A DNA stretch of 64,000 nt from Paraphysomonas bandaiensis (taxonomy: Eukaryota > Protista > Chrysophyceae). The DNA lies in assembly GCA_965644295.1 (NCBI GenBank), contig CBFFRP010000146.1, forward strand, positions 496,001 to 560,000, read 5' to 3'. A program made the position numbers and the translations under genes. Of the stretch, positions 9,475 to 35,312 are shown one piece after another; within the stretch, counting starts at the first letter, position 1, and each line of letters begins with the position of its first letter. The notes under the pieces were generated by a model. That model ran no database searches. It was not told where the DNA came from and saw only the letters and a list, made by a program, of their open reading frames with translations.

Positions 9475-12282
9475 ATGGCTTCCAAGTGGCACCCGCTGCA
9501 TACTGCAGGTAATGTATGAGTTGATTACCATTCGATGACACTCATGGGTGTTTTTGTAGCGATATCTGGTAACTTGGAAACAGTCCTTCAGGAGTACAAG
9601 AAAGGTGTTGTGAAGGATCCTAACATATTGAATTTTAAGGATGCAAACGGATGCTCTGTCATTCACTTCGCAACATTGTCTGGAAATCCGAAATTAGTAA
9701 GAGAGTTAATAAAACTAGGATGTGATGTAAACAGCTTGAGCCGGAAAATGGGAGGAATTAGCCCTCTTGTAATATCCACGATGAAGGGCCACATCGAAGT
9801 CACTAACATATTGCTAGAGAGTGGTGCAGACCCTTCTATAGCTCGCAAAAATGACGGCTGGACACCGTTACACATATGCGCTTTCGACAACAACCCCAAT
9901 ATGGCAGTTCTTTTTCTGTCGAATCCAAGTCTGATAGATATACAAGATGCCGAGAAGCGGACATGTATACATGTAGCTGTGGAACAGCGATCCCGGCAAT
10001 TCATTCATGCTATCGAACGAAAATATCCTCGCTACCGTCACGTTGTTAATGGTCTTCTCTCTCGGTGGAAAGAAGAACAGCATCGTGCCCGTGGGGCTAT
10101 ACTTCCAACGTCTTTAACTGACCCGCCGGGAGGGTGCCATACTCAGTGTCAATCTCCTCTTCGTCCCCCTCGTGCGCCATTCTCTGTTTCGGCCATGTTT
10201 GATGCCGCCCGCAGTGGTGATTGTGATACACTTAAGGCAGTCTTCGCGGAGCATCCGGCTGGAGTAAATACAACTTTTCGAAATGGTTGGACTCTCCTTA
10301 TGGAGGCTGCCGCAGTGGGGAACCATCAAGTTATAAAGGTCTTACTGGAAATGGGATGTGCCACAGAGGCTCGCAATAAGCGTGGTCTTACAGCGTTGCA
10401 TGTCGCTGTACGGCATGGCTACTTGCAGGCCACACGGGCACTACTGGATGCAGGGGCGTGTCCGGATGTTGTTACTCCACGGGGTGACACAATAGAGGAA
10501 ATCGCTGTTGCCAACGGCCACCACACTCTGATGGCCTTTCTCGTGCAGCGTCGATCTCGCGCACTGGAAAACAATGCAGAGAGTGCTTCTTCAGAGAGTT
10601 GCACTCCCACCAATCTTATTCAAGCGCCGCCACATGAAACACTTCCTAGTGATAAAATCAACCTTGATACCTGGCTAGAGAGCTGGCGGCTTACTCAATA
10701 CAAGGATGTTCTTGCCAAAAACGGATTCGATACACTATGCACTCTCGGTTTGCTATCCAATGAAGACCTGGAGTCGATGGGTTTTTTGCTTCTGCATCGA
10801 AAGGTGTTTGCGCTGGGCTTGGATGATGTCAGAAAGAAATATCCACAGCAATTCCAGTGCAAATCTAGAAGTATACATCTAGTAGAGGAACCAGTGAAAA
10901 GTAAAAAGAACAAGAATAGGAATAGAAAGAAGCGCCGGTCCAGGCATAAGAACAAGAAATCTGACTCGCACGTTACACTTCCCGAGCTTAGTCGTGATAT
11001 CTCCCAGCTTACGACTGCAAGTGAGTGGGAGGAGGAAAGCGAAGGTAGTGGAGATGCAGTTGGTGTGTATGCCAGTGCTGGCCTCCTGATCTCGAGAGAA
11101 CCATCTGACAACATTACGGAGCCTTCGTCACATTCTACATCGCCGATTTCCTCAGTCACATATATGCAAGAGCAGGAGGACTGGATGGATGGAACAATAG
11201 ACTTCTCGGGAACATCCGCTACTGGGGCCGGACCTGCCGTCAAAGAATTGAAGTTCGATGAGATCGAACTTGGACCAGTGATTGGTGAAGGCAGCTTTGG
11301 TTCAGTCCGTAGCGGGTATTGGAGGGGTATGAATGTTGCAGTTAAGACCCTTCGCCCCTTGGTAAAGTCTAATGATCCTGGGTCAGGAAAAGATACGTCT
11401 TGTGAGACTCATGGGTCTGGTGACGAATGTCCTAATGTAAGAGAGCTGAGGCACGAAGCATCCACCATGGCAAGAGTGTGTAACCATGCCTTTGTTATTC
11501 AGTTTGTGGGAATCGTGTTGGAGCCTCTTCCCAGCGTAGTCACTGTGTTTTGTGGTTATGGGTCAGTAGAGGACCTATTGGTCAAGTCAGGAAAAGGTAG
11601 CACATTTGATGCCGATATTTTGTTCCGACTAGCAACAGAAGCGGCGATGGGAATTAGACACCTGCATTTAGAGGGAGTAATTCACCGGGATCTGGCAGCA
11701 AGAAACCTCCTTATTGACGATAACTTCCATATACGTGTCGCAGACTTTGGTTTTGCTCGCGTAAAGGAGGAAGCATTTAGCAAGGGATATACAAGATCTG
11801 ATATGGGGCCTATTCGGTGGAGCGCTCCCGAAGCTATGCGCAACAATCAGTACTCCGAAAGTTCTGATGTATTTTCGTTTGGGGTAGTTTTATACGAAAT
11901 GTTTGTCCAACGTCTGCCATGGGAGGGGTACGAGACCTTGGACGTCGCTATACGTGTGTGTTCTGAGGAAAGAATGCAGATACCGGCTGAATTGCATCAG
12001 GGTGTAGCGGATCTAATGAGGTCATGTTGGGCACATCTTTCGGAGAATCGACCATTGCTTGATGTAGTCATTAATGAGTTACGGAGAATGCGACAAGAAC
12101 TAACACCTGAGCTGTTAAGGAAAGATGCAAATGTAGTCGATAACGACTTGACAGAAGAAGAGTATTGGACTCAGAGCGACAGCCATAGCTACGAAGATAT
12201 TGAGAACTTGTCACTGGAAGATAATTTCAGGACAAGCTACGACGATGACACGCGATATACAAGTATGATGATATCAAAGTGA
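9475..12282 (+). CDS. Ankyrin-repeat / SAM-domain / protein kinase (TKL or TK-like)
   Basis: Exon 1 is MASKWHPLHTA, followed by intron 9509-9559. Multiple ankyrin repeats (GWTPLHICA, GLTALHVAVRHG), a SAM domain (WLESWRLTQYKDVLAKNGFD...EDLESMG) and a kinase domain (IGEGSFG, VAVK, HRDLAARN, DFG, PIRWSAPE, SDVFSFG). Confidence 0.9.
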
Positions 12283-12844
12283 TAATACATTAGAAAACGC
12301 CATCACTGCACCATCAGCTACCAGACGTATAATTTCCACGAGATTTGGAAATCTATCCCTGTATCTGTTTTGTGCGCTAATTATTGAAATGTATATGTAG
12401 TTGAATTAAAGTTATGAAATTATTATTATTATTAATATATTATATATACTAGTGTCGGTAACACAACGGCTGCTGTAAATCAGCAGACACAACACGCATG
12501 AACCAATATATTTGTAGCGCTCTACTTTGGTATCTAATCTAGTGTACGAGGTAGTACTTCTGTACTTCTTGACGGTTGCAATTAAGATGGTATTGATGAA
12601 TCTCGGTATCGATGATAGACATGAAAACTACCAAATAAAAGCTATAAAGACAATCAAAACTCTAGTTTTTGACTACGGAAAACGGTCTATAGTCTATAGT
12701 GTGTCAAGTTATGACATAATTGGATGATTTACTAAGTTAACTGAATGTGTATTTACTCATTAACCTTGTATCCTTATAATCAATTATAAAAATCAACATC
12801 CTTGCAGTCTCATTCATCAATTTCATGTAATCTCTACGACCAAT

Positions 12845-13105
12845 CATATCTCGTACGATCTTGTATGATCAATATATTATATTCAGTTTCATTACTACAG
12901 TAGCTATCATGTTGTTAGTTCTCATAATGCTGTTACCACAACTGTACTCTTCGACTAACGGTCATAATTCCAAAAAGTTAGAATAACAAAACTAAACACT
13001 CCCTCTCAATTCAAGCTGTACAATGAATCTTCAAACCACGAGACATAACTGACGGGTAGAATTACAGCTTTTAATTACTCATATAGCAAAACTCATAATA
13101 GTGGC
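12845..13105 (+). repeat. AT-rich dispersed repeat, copy 1 (old TE remnant)
   Basis: Ordered blocks shared with ~39558-39755: CTCRTACGATCTTRTA, TTCARTTTCAKTACTA, AACGGTCATAAT, TAGAAYTACAGCTTTWAATT and AGCAAAACTCA. Confidence 0.55.
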
Positions 13106-13669
13106 CCAGGGCATATAGTTATATTTAACCACGGGTAATGAGGAAGCTGTATCGTTTCCCGCTCAAAATTTTAAACGAGAGCGAAAAGTTCAAGTATTGA
13201 AATTTGGACAAAAGGCAATACTCCTTATGCCTAGGTTAAATTGAAGCTTATCCTCAGTCCTCATGATGTTTAAAACCTAATATATCTAGAATGTGTAACT
13301 ATATGTCTATATGTAGCTTGCTTGCGGCAAGAGAAATAGCTGCTCCCGGAATAATATTTAAGAAAATGAATAAAAAATCAATGGTAATTGCACTAGCTTA
13401 ACTCAAAACAATAATTTCCAATATCTCTACAATAGTTACAACTAATGATGCTGAGGGAGTGTAACAACTCATACATAGCTATCATGATGAGTAGGCAAAA
13501 AAGAATTTGCATGAGGCTTCTTCTTCTTCTTCTTGGCATCATCTTATTTATCTGCAATCACATTTAACCCCTGCTAATGCAAGTGACTCGAATGCTGTGC
13601 TTATGACATGAGGCACACAATCCTGATAAGCACGACGTGACCCAAAACCTGAAAGGACTAGGTACCACG

Positions 13670-14041
13670 CCCTCAACAAAGTCGGACTCGCACCTTTTCG
13701 TGGTGTTCTGGGGGATAAGTACCGGAGTTATTTCTCTGGGAAACTAACGTGAGCCGCAAATATAGTCAGCAGATATTCTTCTGCCCACTCATAGCCGAAT
13801 GCTTGTGTGGTACAAGGGATACCAATAAGTGTCACTTGTGTAGACGTCTTTGGGCCCTGACGAATAAACAGGCATCCGGGAATGGGTCCACCTCAAGGGC
13901 ATCCGGGACAGGGCCCACCTGAAGGGTAACCGGGGTATTGGGCTGCCTGCTGAAGTCAAGCATCCGGGATGTTCACCTTAAGAACTCAGAGCGGAAGTGG
14001 TCGCACCTTGGTGCTTGCGGCGACGCACAAACAGCTTCCGT
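13670..14041 (+). ncRNA. Structured non-coding repeat element, copy 1 (unclassified RNA or ribozyme-bearing retroelement)
   Basis: Highly similar to 34471-34872. GC-rich, no conserved ORF, and several helices preserved by compensatory and G-U changes between the two copies. Confidence 0.6.
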
Positions 14042-15040
14042 AGCGTTAAATAGTAGGATAAAAAAAGTGTGTACTGATTAGTTACAGGTAGAGGTCTAAC
14101 TAGTTTGTCTAGCATTCATCTAGCTACAAAGTTAGTGCAGGTTTTTAACGCCTATTGCTAATAATAAGACTTTCAATATAGGTACCACTACTCCAAATTC
14201 TTCAAGCATTGTTATATATCTTATATATCTCTTCATCGTAATATACTGTATCTGGTATTAGGAATAAGCTCTTATACTGCGCTCTTAATTTCTTACTAAG
14301 CAGTGCATAAATAGACAAGTATAGTTGAATAGATATTACTAGAAACAATAGTATTGTTAGACTGAAAGGAACTCTGTAATCACTAAGACGACTCACCAAA
14401 ACAATCGAGATTATATATTACGTAAAACTTTCACCAGCTTGGAGTGTAATTTAATACATTCATATGAGAAGTCGTCCTTACGGTGCGTCCGTAATACTTA
14501 CTCATCGAGGAGAAAAAGGAATACCGTGACATCAATAGATGACAATAAGCAATGTTGCAAAGCGCGCCCATGCTGGAATGTGATTGCACTTTAACGAGTA
14601 CACGTCGAACATGTCAAATCATTTATTTCCACTATATACAGCTCAAACACCTCTCTGTGTACCCACTGCAAGCACCTCTTATCTGTTAAATTATCGTCTG
14701 GTATTTAGATACAGTGATATCATGCAATATCTCAAGTAGGACAAGGGCCGTACATGTCCCTATCTCCACACACTAGTCTTACGCACGCACCTACAGCGTA
14801 GTATACCATTCCTGGCTGTGTATGTGTAGGTACGTAGATATCTGTATATGTACGTACATATATGTAGCATGGTACGAATAGACATACAGCAGTACATATA
14901 GCTGTATGTACTGCTGTACATATCCACATACACTCCTCTAGCTATTCGAATTACGAATAGAAGGCAGGAGACAGCGCGGTCTAGTTGAGATACACTGTGC
15001 CCCCTACAACTCCCTATCTCAACGAAATTCTATTAGCGGT

Positions 15041-28418: not shown

Positions 28419-31400
28419 ATGATGGAAAGTGGGAAAGAGGACACATTGCATGGTGTCAAGGAAGTATCGCCTGATACAATCAGCACGTGGTTTTATGAGG
28501 GAAATAGATGCGTACTGCCTCTATTGGAGAGAAAATCGTTACTTATATTTTCTTTGGATGGATGCATTCGATCAGCGTGTATTGAATTAATGCTGAACCG
28601 ATGGTTCGATCGCTCAATTCTTTCTGCTATATGTGCAAATGCTGTTTTTCTTGCCTTAGATGACCCACTTTCTGATAACTTCGATGAGGTATTAATGTCT
28701 GTATAAGGTTAACGATATATTTAATTTTTGTATAGCTTTTCTCAGTTGCAGAGGTTGTGTTTAACAGCTTCTTCCTACTGGAATTTTGCATCAAAATCGT
28801 TGCGTTGGGTGCATGGGGAGGACCATCAGGTTACTTTAGAGATCCATGGAATAGGCTAGACTTCGCAGTGCTACTCTTGGGATGGATGTCGTGGACAATG
28901 GATTTTTTATCCACAGCTGAAGTCGGTAACTATTCTTTCATAAGAGCATTGCGGATTTTGAAGGTGACACAACGCAATACGATGACGTTGACCGTCATCA
29001 ATTTTGCGCAGGTGCTAAGAACCGTCAATAGTGTTCCCGGTCTGAAAAGACTCGTAAGAGCTATACTGGATGTCATTCCCCGACTGGTGGGCACGGGATA
29101 TTTATTACTCTTTATTATATTTCTTTTCGGTGAGCTTTCCACTCTAGTGTCTTGTACAGGACAATTTCTCTCCACAGATCAGCATTGTTTCAAAAATACA
29201 TTAACTTTTAACTCATGTCTATATTACTTACTTGGTGCGTGTAGGAATTATCGGTACACAAACCTACATGGGTTTACTTCGAAATCGTTGCTTTCCTGAT
29301 GACGTAAGGAACTCATACGGGTGAGTTGTCTTGCTGTGGTGTGGAATTTTTGCATCATTTGTGTGGAATAAAGGATGCACTATGACGCTGAGGACAAACT
29401 TTGCTCGTTAGAGAGTGGGAGAGGGAGGCAGTGTCACGGCGACACACCTAAATGCTCTCTTACCTACCCAGGTAGGCTCATGTCTGTGCTGGTATGTGTG
29501 CATTGGTTAAACTGCTCTCCCACTGTAGGTACAAATGACGCCAACCCAAACATACACCGCTTCGAGCACTTCGACAACATACTCAACGCTATGTTGTCTC
29601 TGCTTGTCACACTATCTCTTGAAGGTGTGCATTTAGCATTCTTTGCACTTTAGAATCATTTATATTGAGTATAACTAACAGGATGGACGGGATTAATGTA
29701 TGGACTGTTTGATAGTTGGGGGGTCTTTTCCGTTACGTACTTTGTAATCGTGATTCTCTTGGGCTCCTATGTAGCCCTCAACCTTTTGATCGCTGTACTT
29801 TACTTGACCTATGTAGAGACAGTAGAGGACAGGGTAGATGATGATATTAACGATGACGATGTAGTTGATAAATCGGAGGTGACTCACAGGAGGAGTCGAA
29901 GTGAATCTATGAATATTTCTGTTGACAACATATCTGGCGATAACACCACTCGTCAGGGACGGAGGGGAAGTGGGGGCTCTTTAATGTCATCTGTTGCTGA
30001 GCACAGTGAGTGGCCTAGTCTTGTTCAATATCTACATGATTTCGGAATCACTTGTCACTCCTTGTACAGTTTCCTCCAGCACAATCCCAAATATATGAAA
30101 ATGCGAGATATTCTTACTGGTGTGGTAAACAGTGGATCGTTTAACTTGTTCATAGTTTGCGTGATTTTGTTCAATATTCTTGCACTTGCCATTGAAGCTG
30201 ACTCATCGGCGAATGAAGTTCATTATTTTCTCTACATTTCGAATATAGTTTGTACTGCAATATTTACAATGGAACTCGTCGTGCGCACTGTCGCTGCCAA
30301 TATCCCGACTTTTCTCTATGAAAAGTTTAACCTATTAGACACAGCCATTGTTGCAATTAGCATAGCTGAATTAGCTTTGAAAACAAACTCTATTGTGTCC
30401 CTGCTTCGAGCCTTACGTGCACTGCGAACCTTCAAACTTCTCAACCGTTGGAAATCTCTCCAACTTCTCGTCAATGCTGTTTTAAGGTCTGGTCCTGGAC
30501 TGGGATACTTTGCTATAATTCTTGTGCTATTTATATTTGTATTTGCGCTGGCTGGGCGCTCAATTTTTGCTGGAAAACTTGACGATCCAGAGTTTCAATA
30601 TGGAACACCTCGAGCTAATTTCGATACTTTTTTTGATTCCTGCCTAACTACATTCCAGATGGTAACGGGGAAAAGCTGGAATGACATTCTATTTCGGTCT
30701 ATGGAGTACAATCCGGTGGTTGGATGTACATTTATGGTCATACTGTATATTGCGGGGAACGTGATACTACTGAAGCTATTTCTTGCCATTTTATTGGAAA
30801 ACTTCAGTGAAGGGAGGTTCAAAACGGGGAAAACGTCGTACTATGACTACCTTGAACACGATGCGGATATGGAGGTTATGCAATCAGGTCTATATACTTC
30901 GGTAGTTGTACTGATAACCGGATGCACACAGCGTATGTGGCGCTCTTGCAGCGACAGAGGTCGTAATTTTCTCCCCGAGACTTGGTCCCCGTATGGTATT
31001 GACGACGAGAGTGACGATGATACGCCCACTCCCCTAGATAATGATAGTGATGGGAAACCAATAAATTTCATGTGCTCACGAGATTTATCATCAATAAAGG
31101 AGCTACTGATGGATCTACCTGTCGCTGACCATTATCGTGGCAAAAGGGTTTTTATTGATTGTTTTACCGGTGCCGAGCTACTAGGTTATTTGGTTGCAAG
31201 AGGGGCTGCTCTGACTTCTGATATAGCCTTGGAACTGGCTGGAGAGATACTTGAAGATCAGCTAATATCTCCTGTATATATGATGGAGGATGATGTGGAT
31301 ATATTTCGCGACGATAAAGTCCTACATAGTGGTGCCCGCTCTTTTCGCGAAAGTAATTCATGGAAATATACTGCCGACATGAATTTTGAGTTCCGAGGTG

Positions 31401-34252
31401 ACCAGAGTTTGTATCGCCTGAATGGTCAGTCGGAGCAGGTTTCTGAGTGGCTTCTTTTGTCAAAGGATGCTGAATATAAAATCAGTCAGATTAAGAACAA
31501 AGAGAAGCGCCGGCAAATGCGGCGTTTCTTAGCTGGTCATGCCTGTGGTATACTCGGACCAAACAACAAACTGAGAATTATATGCGCTGAGATTGTGTTA
31601 CATAAATGGTTTGAATGCGCAATAATATGTTTGATAGTGGCCAGCAGTATTCTACTGGCTGTAGACAATCCTGCCGCTCCACGAGGGACAACCATATCTC
31701 TCACGTTGTACTATGCAGATATCGGATTCACATTGGCGTTCTCGGTTGAGATGATTATCAAAATGATAGCTATGGGGATCATGTATACACCAAACGCATA
31801 TTTTACCAGCTCGTGGAATATTCTAGATTTTACTATAGTAGTGGTATCTATTCTCTCGTTGTCATTGTCATCCTTGGACCTTTCTTTTCTTAAATCGCTG
31901 AGGGCGGTTCGAGCAGTTCGACCTCTTAGGCTATTATCTCGCGCACCTGGAATGCGGGTAGCTATCAACGCTATAGTAATGGTTATTCCGTCTCTTCTTA
32001 ATTTTTGTTCTGTCGTGAGTGTATTTCTTCTAACATTTGCGATACTTGGCTCTTCTCTTTTCAAAAATAAACTAAACTATTGTCACGCTACTGGAAGTTG
32101 GCCTTCAGAAGATAACAGTAGTTATGAGGACGAATACCGTTACATGTTAGACAAAGAGGAATGCCACGGTAGCGTGACCAACTCAGGGGGGTACACTGCA
32201 AACTTATCTTGGATCCCTGCAGACTCGAATTTCGACACTATTGGCAATGCTCTCATAACACTATTTGAGCTCACCACAATGGAAAATTGGAATCGCATTA
32301 TGTATCCAACTTTAGACATACCTAGTTCGTCGAATGCGGCCCCTGTGATGGATCACTCAAAGTACAATGCGCTTTTCTTTGTGTGCTTCATCATTGTCGG
32401 TGCATTTTTTATTGGCAACCTCTTTGTAGGGATCATAGTACACAAGTTTGAAAAGGCACGGGTACTAGACAAAAGGAGTGTGTTTATGACTGACGAGCAA
32501 TCTAACTGGCTAAACGGAATGAAAGTTGTCCTTGCGGCCCGACCACAGAAGACCTCTCCGATTCCGTCTGAGACCAACCTTTGGGGTATCCAAAGGTCTA
32601 TTTACATGATTGTATGTAACCCTTATTTCTGTGGGACTATAGACGCAGTCATCGTGCTAAATATGCTTGTGATGTCGTTGTATCACTTCGGACAGTCGAA
32701 CCACTTTTCGTCGTTTTTGTTTGCATGTGAAGTTTTATTTGTCAATGTATATGGCGTGGAGCTCATATTGAGGTACATTGCACTCAACGACATGTACGCA
32801 TTTTGGAAGGCTCCCTGGAATATATTTGATATTGTCATATTAGTGGGTGGTGTTTTGGATATATCAGGAACGAGTAGGGGCGTAAATATCACAGTACTCA
32901 GGGTTCTCCGATGTGGGCGCCTTCTCAAGCTCATTCGACGCTCGAAGCACATATACGTACCTCTCAAGACACTGTTCTATTCACTTCCGGCCCTTTTTAA
33001 CATCGGCTCTTTGCTCCTCCTAGCATTTTTTATATTTGCTGTTGTAGGGGTGAACTTGTTTCATGACGCCGATCGTGATGGAATATGGCTCACACAGTAT
33101 AATAACTTTGAGAACTTCGGTTCTGCTATGGTTCTTCTTTTTCGTTGCCTGACAAACGAGAATTGGAATAGTATTATGCATGTTTATGTGCGTCAGGGTT
33201 TCTCTTTTGCACCGCCTTTTTTTGCTGGATTTTTACTGTGCTGTAACTTTACCATGGTAAACCTTTTCATTGCCGTTATCCTTGAAAACTTTGAAACTGC
33301 CCTAAATGGGGAGCGCAAGGTACAGGTGCAGAGCACGGAAATGTTTGTAGATGCTTGGGCCGCGATTAACGACGAATTGCTCGGATCAGACACCGATACA
33401 CTGCCTGCGTATGCCCTTGTAAAGTTATTACACATGTTGCCTTATCCGTTAGGAATACTTGGGACATCAGAGGCTGATCTATCCTTAGGAAATCCAACAG
33501 ATCGTGTACTTTATCGCGCTTTTATTATATCTCTTCTTCGATCGCTTAACTTAAAGGTTGACTCCTCAAATCGTGTGTATTTCGTAGATGCTATATCCGC
33601 AATAAGTCAGCGGGCGAATGAAGAGAGCTCAGAAACCATTTTTGAAAATATGTCTTCTCATCAACGATTGGAGCTATTGTATAATATGAGGAAGCACTGT
33701 CACAACAAGACGATGACCAAAGTAGAGACAAAGTGCAAAGGACAGGTGTTTACAGCGATTGACTTGACAACTGAATTTAATTGTGCCGCAACCATACAAG
33801 CCGTATGGCGTGGTGCTCTGCTTCGGAAGCGAATCAGGGACTATAAAACAGATGACACTTCTGCACTTGCTGACGGAGTACAGAACAAGCAAAATGCCGA
33901 CAGGAGTTCTCCAGTTGTCGCCATGCAAGCGATTAAAACACCCCGAATGCTAGTTAAAAGTACATTGACTCGAGTGTTCCGACATCCATCGAATTCGCAA
34001 AGTTCAGGCGACGAGGGCTGTACCAATAATGCCCTCCCAGAAGTCTGCTCTCCGAAGTCAAATGGATGGAAAAAAGTATTTTTCCCATTAGATAAACCAA
34101 ATGCGGGAACTATGAGGGAGGCAAGCCCAGTGTTCTGGCCCCTTCCTTCTGGAGGCGCAGAGTTGGAAATGGTCCAACCTTCTGTTGATGATGATGGCAT
34201 AGGTGTAGAAACTAGGGCCACAACTATTTTCAACAGCGCTAGAGTGATATAA
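28419..34252 (+). CDS. Four-domain voltage-gated cation channel (Nav/Cav-like) with a DEP insertion and an IQ motif
   Basis: Four S1-S6 repeats with basic S4 helices (IRALRILK|VLRT, LRALRALRTFK, LRAVRAVRPLR, LRVLRCGRLLK). Pore loops are SLEGW, TGKSW, TMENW and TNENW. Also NLFIAVILENF and the IQ motif IQAVWRGALLRK. Domain I is split by several short introns. Confidence 0.93.
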
Positions 34253-34470: not shown

Positions 34471-34872
34471 TATTCCTCAACAAAGTCGGACTCGCACCTT
34501 TTCGTGGTGCTCTGGGGAATAAGTACCGGAGATATTTCTCCGGGAGCCTAACGTGAGTCGCATATATAGTCAGCAGATATTGTCCTGCCCACTCATAGCC
34601 AAATGCTTACGTGGTACAAGGGACACTAATTTGTGTCGCTTGTGTAGACTTCCTTGGGCCTTGAAGAATAAGTAGGCATCGGGGAATGGGCCCACCTCAA
34701 GGGCATCCGGGATATTGGGCTGCCTGCTGAAGTCAAGCATCCGGGCTGTTCTCCTGAAGTCAGCAGATGTCAGGTATATCAACATTCTGCTTGCTCAATG
34801 CGTTTGCTTTGAGTGATAGAGCGAAAGTGTTTGCACCTTGGTGTTGGCGGCAACGCACAAACAGCTTTCGTG
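34471..34872 (+). ncRNA. Structured non-coding repeat element, copy 2
   Basis: Paralog of 13670-14041. Perfect helices CCGGAGA/TCTCCGG, GACAC/GTGTC and CGAAAG/CTTTCG, plus G-U-containing helices TATTCCTCA/TGGGGAATA and GACTCGC/GTGAGTC. Confidence 0.6.
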
Positions 34873-35312
34873 TTAAGCACTAGTTAGTTAAATTATTTTG
34901 CTACATTAGTTCTGACACTTACACGCCTGTTGATAATAATCAGACATTCACTACTAACTACTAAGTGTATTGAATACCATTATATTGTACCAGTAGGCTT
35001 GCGTAACAATAAATTGCTAAGAGTTCACCAAATATAATACCTTACAATTATTTACAAAGCATACAAGCATTGGCATGCAAGCTAGCGTACCAGAGACACC
35101 ACTAGTATAGTGTACATGATGAAATAACTTGTGGATAGTAGAGTTTTCAGCACTTTTTCTTACATTTACTAGAATACTTCTCGATTCATCCGTCTGTATC
35201 ATATCTACCAAAGAATAATTACGCATTGCTTGTTTAGAATCGGGTTGAAGTATGACAAGCCTAGTTTAAAATTTGTAAGTGTAATATAATTTTATTAACA
35301 ATAAGTTTCATG

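Follow-up and report, generated by a model that had tools for sequence, protein, structure and literature searches.

The 64,000-nucleotide stretch of the Paraphysomonas bandaiensis genome analyzed here (the window) contains two copies of a non-autonomous non-LTR retroposon of the SINE-like/SIDE type, about 510 bp long, which is present in this genome in about 1000 copies. An HDV-like double-pseudoknot ribozyme can be fitted to its first 87 nt and is predicted from the sequence to cleave itself at the first base of the element. Our preferred reading, which we regard as very probable, is a ribozyme-headed SINE-like non-LTR retroposon with a proposed self-cutting 5' end, spread by target-primed reverse transcription. 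An earlier note had presented the same DNA as a two-copy structured RNA, and what was claimed as a new RNA gene is now replaced by a concrete mobile element.

Copy number, borders and classification

Between copy 1, which starts at 13670, and copy 2, which starts at 34474, identity is ~90% over ~370 nt, and their flanks cannot be aligned. The family is far larger than the two copies first noticed. The 62.5 Mb assembly contains 40 or more full-length copies (96-99% identity), and a first look yielded 2793 candidates. With up to two mismatches allowed, the 5' terminal 23-mer has 1209 matches and the 3' terminal 23-mer 524 in the 62.5 Mb genome, against 0 for the reversed controls. Exact matches to the ribozyme core number 380 in the genome and belong to one lineage with three P4 variants. 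In DNA runs under three organism labels, the element reaches a summed word depth thousands of times that of single-copy DNA. The family can serve as an annotation marker for ~1% of the genome.

Thirty loci compared side by side shared the 5' border sequence CCCTCAACAAAG, which corresponds to window position 13670, and the 3' border ...AAGACTTTCAATAT, which corresponds to 14179. The latter lies 138 nt past 14041, where the element had been thought to end, and the true unit of ~510 bp (13670-14179), flanked by TSDs, has sharp 5' and 3' borders common to 30 or more loci (Table 1). Head-tail pairs span 484-515 bp, a spread due to the variable number of GC-rich 27-nt repeats inside the element; copy 2 has one repeat fewer than copy 1. 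Exact TSDs of 8-16 bp, with a mode of 11-12, were found in 27 of 39 head-tail pairs, while mismatched flanks used as a control reach at least 8 bp once per ~1950 trials. The majority of the TSDs directly abut C1, begin with A and come after T. At the 3' end of some copies there is an additional AATAT, or the terminal 14-mer is present twice.

No ORF longer than 57 aa and no terminal inverted repeats are present in the element. An ARAGORN scan detected no tRNA or tmRNA, and Rfam gave nothing relevant, either for the whole window at the gathering threshold or for the element at E up to 10, so the comparison with Rfam proposed in the earlier note yielded no clear match to a known family. The sharp ends, the absence of an ORF, of terminal inverted repeats and of tRNA or Rfam matches, and the TSDs in 27 of 39 pairs place the family among the non-autonomous non-LTR retroposons (SINE-like/SIDE), which it resembles in its variable TSDs, defined 3' end, non-coding sequence and lack of terminal inverted repeats or LTRs. 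The combination of variable-length TSDs, a fixed 3' end with terminal slippage and non-coding sequence points to target-primed reverse transcription by a LINE enzyme. A MITE or another DNA transposon was considered and rejected, as terminal inverted repeats are lacking and the TSDs vary from 8 to 16 bp instead of having a fixed length. Six young 5'-truncated copies were found, all six without a TSD; later deletion or nested insertion is their probable origin, and therefore they do not document truncation at insertion.

The family is divided into subfamilies. Several of them, including that of copy 2, lack ~14061-14141 (joints from 14060 to 14142-14151), and an alternative tail starting TCAGAGTTAAG... 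exists in the family. Copy 2 has an extra segment (34763-34815) and a shortened tail, its 3' end is approximate, and no clear TSD is left around it. The extra segment, already described as an insertion, is real but is not private to this copy, being a subfamily feature found in many contigs. The subfamily markers of copy 2, TGAGTGATAG..CGAAAG..CTTTCG, likewise recur at other loci.

Table 1. Positions of the retroposon copies and their parts in the window
Feature	Position	Strand	Remarks
Left TSD	13660-13668		AGGTACCAC; one extra G at 13669 before the element
Copy 1, full length, 510 bp	13670-14179	+	Young subfamily, 98-99% identical to many copies
HDV-like ribozyme module, copy 1	13670-13756	+	Pairing read from the sequence, with covariation in relatives
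Predicted cleavage site	5' of C13670	+	First base of the element
P1	13670-75/13709-14	+	CCCUCA (nt 1-6) with UGGGGG (nt 40-45)
P2	13683-90/13750-56	+	nt 14-21 with nt 81-87; A17 (A at 13686) bulged
P3	13691-94/13702-05	+	CACC with GGUG
L3	13695-13701	+	7 nt, UUUUCGU
P1.1	U13697:A13715	+	Single A-U pair
P4	13722-27/13734-39	+	CCGGAG with CUCUGG
J4/2	13740-49	+	GAAAC75-UAA-CG; candidate catalytic C is C13744
Internal imperfect 27-nt tandem repeats, GC-rich	13871-13982	+	GGCATCCGGGA...CACCTSAAG
3' stem-loop domain	13988-14041	+	Outer stem CGGAAG/CTTCCG
A7 run, then tail module	14060-14179	+	Ends in AAGACTTTCAATAT
Right TSD	14180-14188		AGGTACCAC; direct repeat D3, 13659-13668 = 14179-14188
Copy 2	34474-34954	+	Older subfamily, core ~90% identical to copy 1
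Ribozyme module, copy 2	34474-34560	+	P1 with U1-A45 in place of C1-G45; P4 CCGGAG/CUCCGG

Structure of the proposed ribozyme head

In copy 1 the helices P1, P1.1, P2, P3 and P4 can all form, in the canonical strand order, giving the nested double pseudoknot, with P1 crossing P2, and with P3 and P4 nested. Two of these helices had been seen before as isolated stems: CCCTCA/TGGGGG is P1 and CCGGAG/CTCTGG is P4, and every hexamer and tetramer listed as a stem strand in the earlier note was found where it had been placed. In J4/2, C13744 is followed by UAA(CG) and then by the 3' strand of P2. This C is invariant in alignments A4 and A5 and is retained in copy 2, where J4/2 is altered (GAGCCUAA). 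One P4 variant among the genome copies, CCGGAGAG-AUU-CUCUCUGG, makes the helix two pairs longer through changes on both strands. Every full copy has its genomic 5' border at the first nucleotide of P1, which most of the TSDs adjoin. Features weighing against a ribozyme are the bulged A in P2, the single A-U pair of P1.1, and J1/2 and J3/1 segments longer than those of the relatives.

The head resembles the ribozymes of trypanosomatid retroposons in sequence as well as in fold. It is identical to LmSIDER2A(81)Rz at 56 of 79 positions (71%, z = 5.4); neither 2000 shuffles nor 2000 window 91-mers gave so high a score. In vitro activity has been shown for this ribozyme of Leishmania major SIDER2A (PMC4035085). 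Nucleotides 27-77 of L1Tc, rebuilt from published primers (PMC3185411), share GTGGTG, AGTAC and GGAAGCTAAG with the window head. C1 is also where L1TcRz starts, and its P1.1 likewise consists of one pair (PMC3185411). As in the Pr77/L1TcRz type, the module makes up the first 77-90 nt of a non-LTR retroposon. No curated Rfam covariance model of HDV type matched the head, either at the gathering threshold or when E values up to 10 were admitted; such models are narrow and have no means of encoding pseudoknots.

The fold of the head had been held to be conserved by compensatory changes between the two window copies. This is not borne out within the genome: among 46 distinct copies 93.0% of the cells are paired, against 92.9% in shuffles, and the 3 double changes against 1.9 expected are not significant, as is to be expected for decaying copies of one lineage.

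Relatives in metagenomes and covariation

Metagenome contigs were scanned with a pattern composed of CACCTNNNCGTGGT, AGTAC and GGAARCYAA. It contains only unpaired or P3 motifs common to the window head and the trypanosomatid ribozymes, and P1, P2, P4 and P1.1 were left out of it. At least 120 matching stretches (L091-L210) were found in soil and other metagenome contigs. The matches listed represent ~45 families in which the sequences of P1, P2 and P4 are wholly different; 30 distinct P1 strands and 38 distinct P2 strands occur among them. In 34 of the 45 families listed P1 pairs at 6/6 positions, compared with 25% of mismatched controls, and P2 pairs at 6/7 or more in 39 of the 45, compared with 8% of controls.

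An alignment of 35 of the listed relatives was made with MAFFT, excluding the copies of the window family. In these relatives 88.3% of the cells are paired, against 59.9% in shuffles, and 216 cells show double changes, against 68; neither value is reached in any of 500 shuffles. Covariation is strong for P1, P2 and P4. The P1.1 pair, formed by the third base of L3 and the first base after P1, is Watson-Crick in 35/35 relatives and occurs as four pair types. A covariance model built from the 35 relatives has only two matches in the 64 kb window, at 13674-13756 (E = 3e-14) and 34478-34560 (E = 3e-12), although this agreement is partly by construction, because the scan pattern was derived partly from the window sequence. 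The proposal of a selected RNA fold on the + strand is thus upheld for the 5' module, on the strength of relatives in other organisms and not from the comparison of the two copies. The relatives also supply an alignment for a curated model of this ribozyme subtype, whose two copies in the window are missed by the current Rfam models.

Two of the metagenome ribozymes lie upstream of ORFs with Exo_endo_phos and RVT_1 domains (L119:3-3329, - strand, and L129:939-3419, + strand). Judged by this arrangement, L119 and L129 are predicted autonomous APE-type LINEs headed by this L1Tc-type ribozyme. Another metagenome family, with P1 CTCGGT/ACCGGG, occurs on ~40 contigs among the matches listed, and its 5' border is nucleotide 1 of P1.

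The best of the competing explanations, though an unlikely one, is that the head acts mainly or only as an internal promoter, like the trypanosomatid Pr77, and that the ribozyme fold is a relic or inactive in this family. In L1Tc the same 77 nt serve as RNA polymerase II promoter and as ribozyme (PMC3383444, PMC4748587), several SIDER ribozymes showed no activity in vitro although their folds are adequate (PMC4035085), and the window P1.1 and P2 have the weaknesses mentioned above. However, the pairing partners are conserved, and the covariation of P1, P1.1, P2 and P4 in the relatives indicates constraint at the level of RNA and not of DNA; moreover, the genomic 5' end is exactly nucleotide 1 of P1. 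The roles of promoter and ribozyme are, besides, not mutually exclusive.

A classical Pol III SINE, whose tRNA-, 5S- or 7SL-derived head had escaped the tools, would match the family in size, in copy number, in having TSDs of variable length and in being non-coding. We consider this very unlikely, since ARAGORN found no tRNA, Rfam gave no tRNA, 5S or 7SL match at E up to 10, and the HDV-like fold accounts for the head base by base. The ribozyme-headed retroposon remains the preferred reading, and it offers a predicted ribozyme-defined 5' end for a SINE-like family without a Pol III promoter.

The 3' domain

The outer stem of the 3' domain (CGGAAG/CTTCCG) contains one covarying pair, which is GC in 20 copies, AU in 8 and GU in 6 and is broken in none. 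The domain has 11-12 double-change cells, against ~4 expected, and 0/500 shuffles reach this number. Support for the stem is nevertheless modest, because one or two events in related copies account for these cells. The interior of the domain predicted by RNAalifold differs from that drawn before: the TCGC/GCGA stem, also reported as compensatory, does fit, but two hairpins (CUUG and GNRA loops, GCGA/GUGA/GCAA) fit equally well, and both changes in this pair are CpG transitions.

The 9-mer TCGCACCTT, which belongs to P2/P3 of the ribozyme at 13688-13696, is repeated at 14001-14009 in the 3' domain. There it is followed by GGTG, without the L3 core; part of the P3 hairpin may have been duplicated inside the element.

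The earlier note had favored a cellular structured ncRNA gene family under purifying selection for its fold, with an RNA-mobilised element as the other option. The local stems, the few compensatory-looking differences between copy 1 and copy 2, and the 3' stem pair that passes through GC, GU and AU states without being broken would all suit such a gene. Against it stand ~1000 dispersed copies with TSDs and random decay, a head without covariation inside the family, a variable repeat number, and an overall fold that is not unusually stable (MFE of the whole element, z = -0.31). Copy number and TSDs largely refute the ncRNA gene, which we now hold to be highly improbable, and with it the idea of an undescribed structured RNA family; it is the RNA-mobilised option that the dispersed, TSD-flanked retroposon confirms. 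There is just as slight a chance of a retrozyme-like circularising element: the 9-mer is indeed present in both head and 3' domain, HDV-type cleavage leaves ends that a ligase could join, and one contig of a DNA run joins tail to head with 11 nt between, but the copies are dispersed singly with TSDs and not in tandem, and the 3' domain lacks L3, P1, P2 and J4/2, so that each unit has only one ribozyme.

Genomic neighborhood

Both window copies lie downstream of the preceding gene and in the same orientation. Copy 1 is located ~1.4 kb downstream of a 915-aa ORF with ankyrin repeats, a SAM domain and a TKL-type protein kinase (9535-12282, +). Another dispersed repeat, with a word depth of 70-300 times the single-copy level in DNA runs, is found just upstream of copy 1 (12633-13298), and 13521-13631 is mildly repeated. 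Copy 2 begins 220 bp past the stop codon of an intronless ORF (29696-34252, +) for a voltage-gated cation channel of 1518 aa, with four domains and, in a cytoplasmic linker, a DEP domain, assigned from Ion_trans, PKD_channel and DEP matches. A 9 kb contig from a related strain (run X5, record 32) aligns from 14179 on and has 45 unaligned letters before this point. It could be an empty insertion site for copy 1; no joint was listed.

Proposed mode of spread

The ribozyme-headed retroposon may spread as follows. The + strand would be transcribed, probably either within longer transcripts (of the host or by read-through) or by means of a promoter inside the element. In the RNA, the first 87 nt would fold into the HDV-like nested double pseudoknot and cut immediately 5' of C1, giving every RNA an identical 5' end. 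The endonuclease and reverse transcriptase of a LINE would then recognise the 3' tail and nick the target, often at T|A, and the RNA would be copied by target-primed reverse transcription, generating the TSDs of 8-16 bp. Self-cleavage, the mode of transcription and the role of the LINE partner are steps that we infer.

Contigs of a polyA marine metatranscriptome contain the family, and flanking unique intergenic DNA is absent from them; for a thousand-copy repeat, such contigs in RNA libraries could be explained by DNA carry-over. When the element was compared by BLAST with 30 RT loci, only a neighboring tail fragment matched, no exact tail match next to an RT was present among the matches listed, and no LINE with the head or the tail of the family came to light there. 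A non-LTR-type RT fragment (L043:1604-3130, +, which is G000 C15 at ~15.6-17.1 kb), with RVT_1 over ~880 nt, is directly adjacent to a truncated retroposon copy that lies on the other strand, and it is 23% identical to the RT of L119.

Comparison with known systems

R2 with its SIDEs, and likewise L1Tc, NARTc and SIDER, are known cases of non-LTR retroposons headed by HDV-like ribozymes (PMC3185411, PMC4035085, PMC3414825). This kind of element is therefore already known, and the window family is a further ribozyme-headed retroposon and not a new class of RNA. Classical tRNA-derived SINEs are, like this family, short, non-coding, present in high copy number and flanked by variable TSDs, with a tail presumably recognised by a LINE RT, but the family has no Pol III-type head and its 5' end is set by the predicted ribozyme fold.

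The HDV-like ribozymes of genomic HDV, CPEB3 and drz type (Rfam RF00094, RF00622 and related models) have the same order of parts as the window head (P1-P2-P3-L3-P3'-P1'-P1.1-P4-J4/2-P2') and the same C three nucleotides before the 3' strand of P2. The window head differs from them in that P1.1 is one pair instead of two G-C pairs, position +1 is C and not G, and there is no Rfam match. In R2 and the SIDEs of Drosophila and other animals, a 5' HDV-like ribozyme frees the RNA of the element from a co-transcript, and P1.1, P3 and L3 are the conserved core, as in the window head. The R2 SIDEs are internally deleted non-autonomous copies that keep the ribozyme and the 3' end (PMC3414825, PMC3774820). 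However, R2 is site-specific for 28S rDNA and has a restriction-like endonuclease, whereas the window family is dispersed, with the variable TSDs typical of APE-type LINEs.

The closest likeness is to the retroposons of trypanosomatids. L1Tc, NARTc, ingi, RIME and SIDER1/2 carry the HDV-like module in their first 77-90 nt, as the window family does, and their short non-autonomous derivatives likewise reach hundreds to thousands of copies. The L1TcRz/Pr77 type agrees with the window head in cleavage 5' of C1 (here predicted), in the single-pair P1.1 and in the unpaired motifs U-N-N-N-CGU in L3, AGUAC in J1/4 and GGAARCYAA in J4/2. The insertion sites also invite comparison, as most TSD-flanked insertions here start with an A preceded by T, and the site used by L1Tc is TATG|A (PMC5814959). 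There are differences as well. J1/2 and J3/1 are longer than in L1TcRz, P2 is bulged and the body has GC-rich 27-nt repeats; in place of the poly(A) tail of the Pr77 and L1Tc type, whose elements are themselves LINEs of the ingi/L1Tc clade (APE-RT-RNase H) or are moved by them, the element has CAATAT at its 3' terminus, where short duplications occasionally occur. The host, unlike the trypanosomatids, is a marine protist whose genes alternate between strands and appear to contain introns.

A search of the available literature found no account of HDV-like ribozymes in diatoms or other stramenopiles, nor of Pr77 outside trypanosomatids. The head described here is tied by sequence and fold to Pr77/L1TcRz in an organism that does not look like a trypanosomatid, and the wider spread of this ribozyme subtype among environmental eukaryotes, with its clean covariation, is the most interesting by-product of the analysis. 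We suggest tentatively, as an idea somewhat more likely to fail than to hold, that the Pr77/L1Tc-type module, described until now as a hallmark of trypanosomatid retroposons, is a widespread 5' processing module, either ancient or horizontally spread, of APE-type LINEs and their SINE-like parasites in distant eukaryotes, and that it heads here a still-active family freed from read-through transcripts of the host, possibly acting on the 3' UTRs of its neighbors as SIDER2 does in Leishmania.
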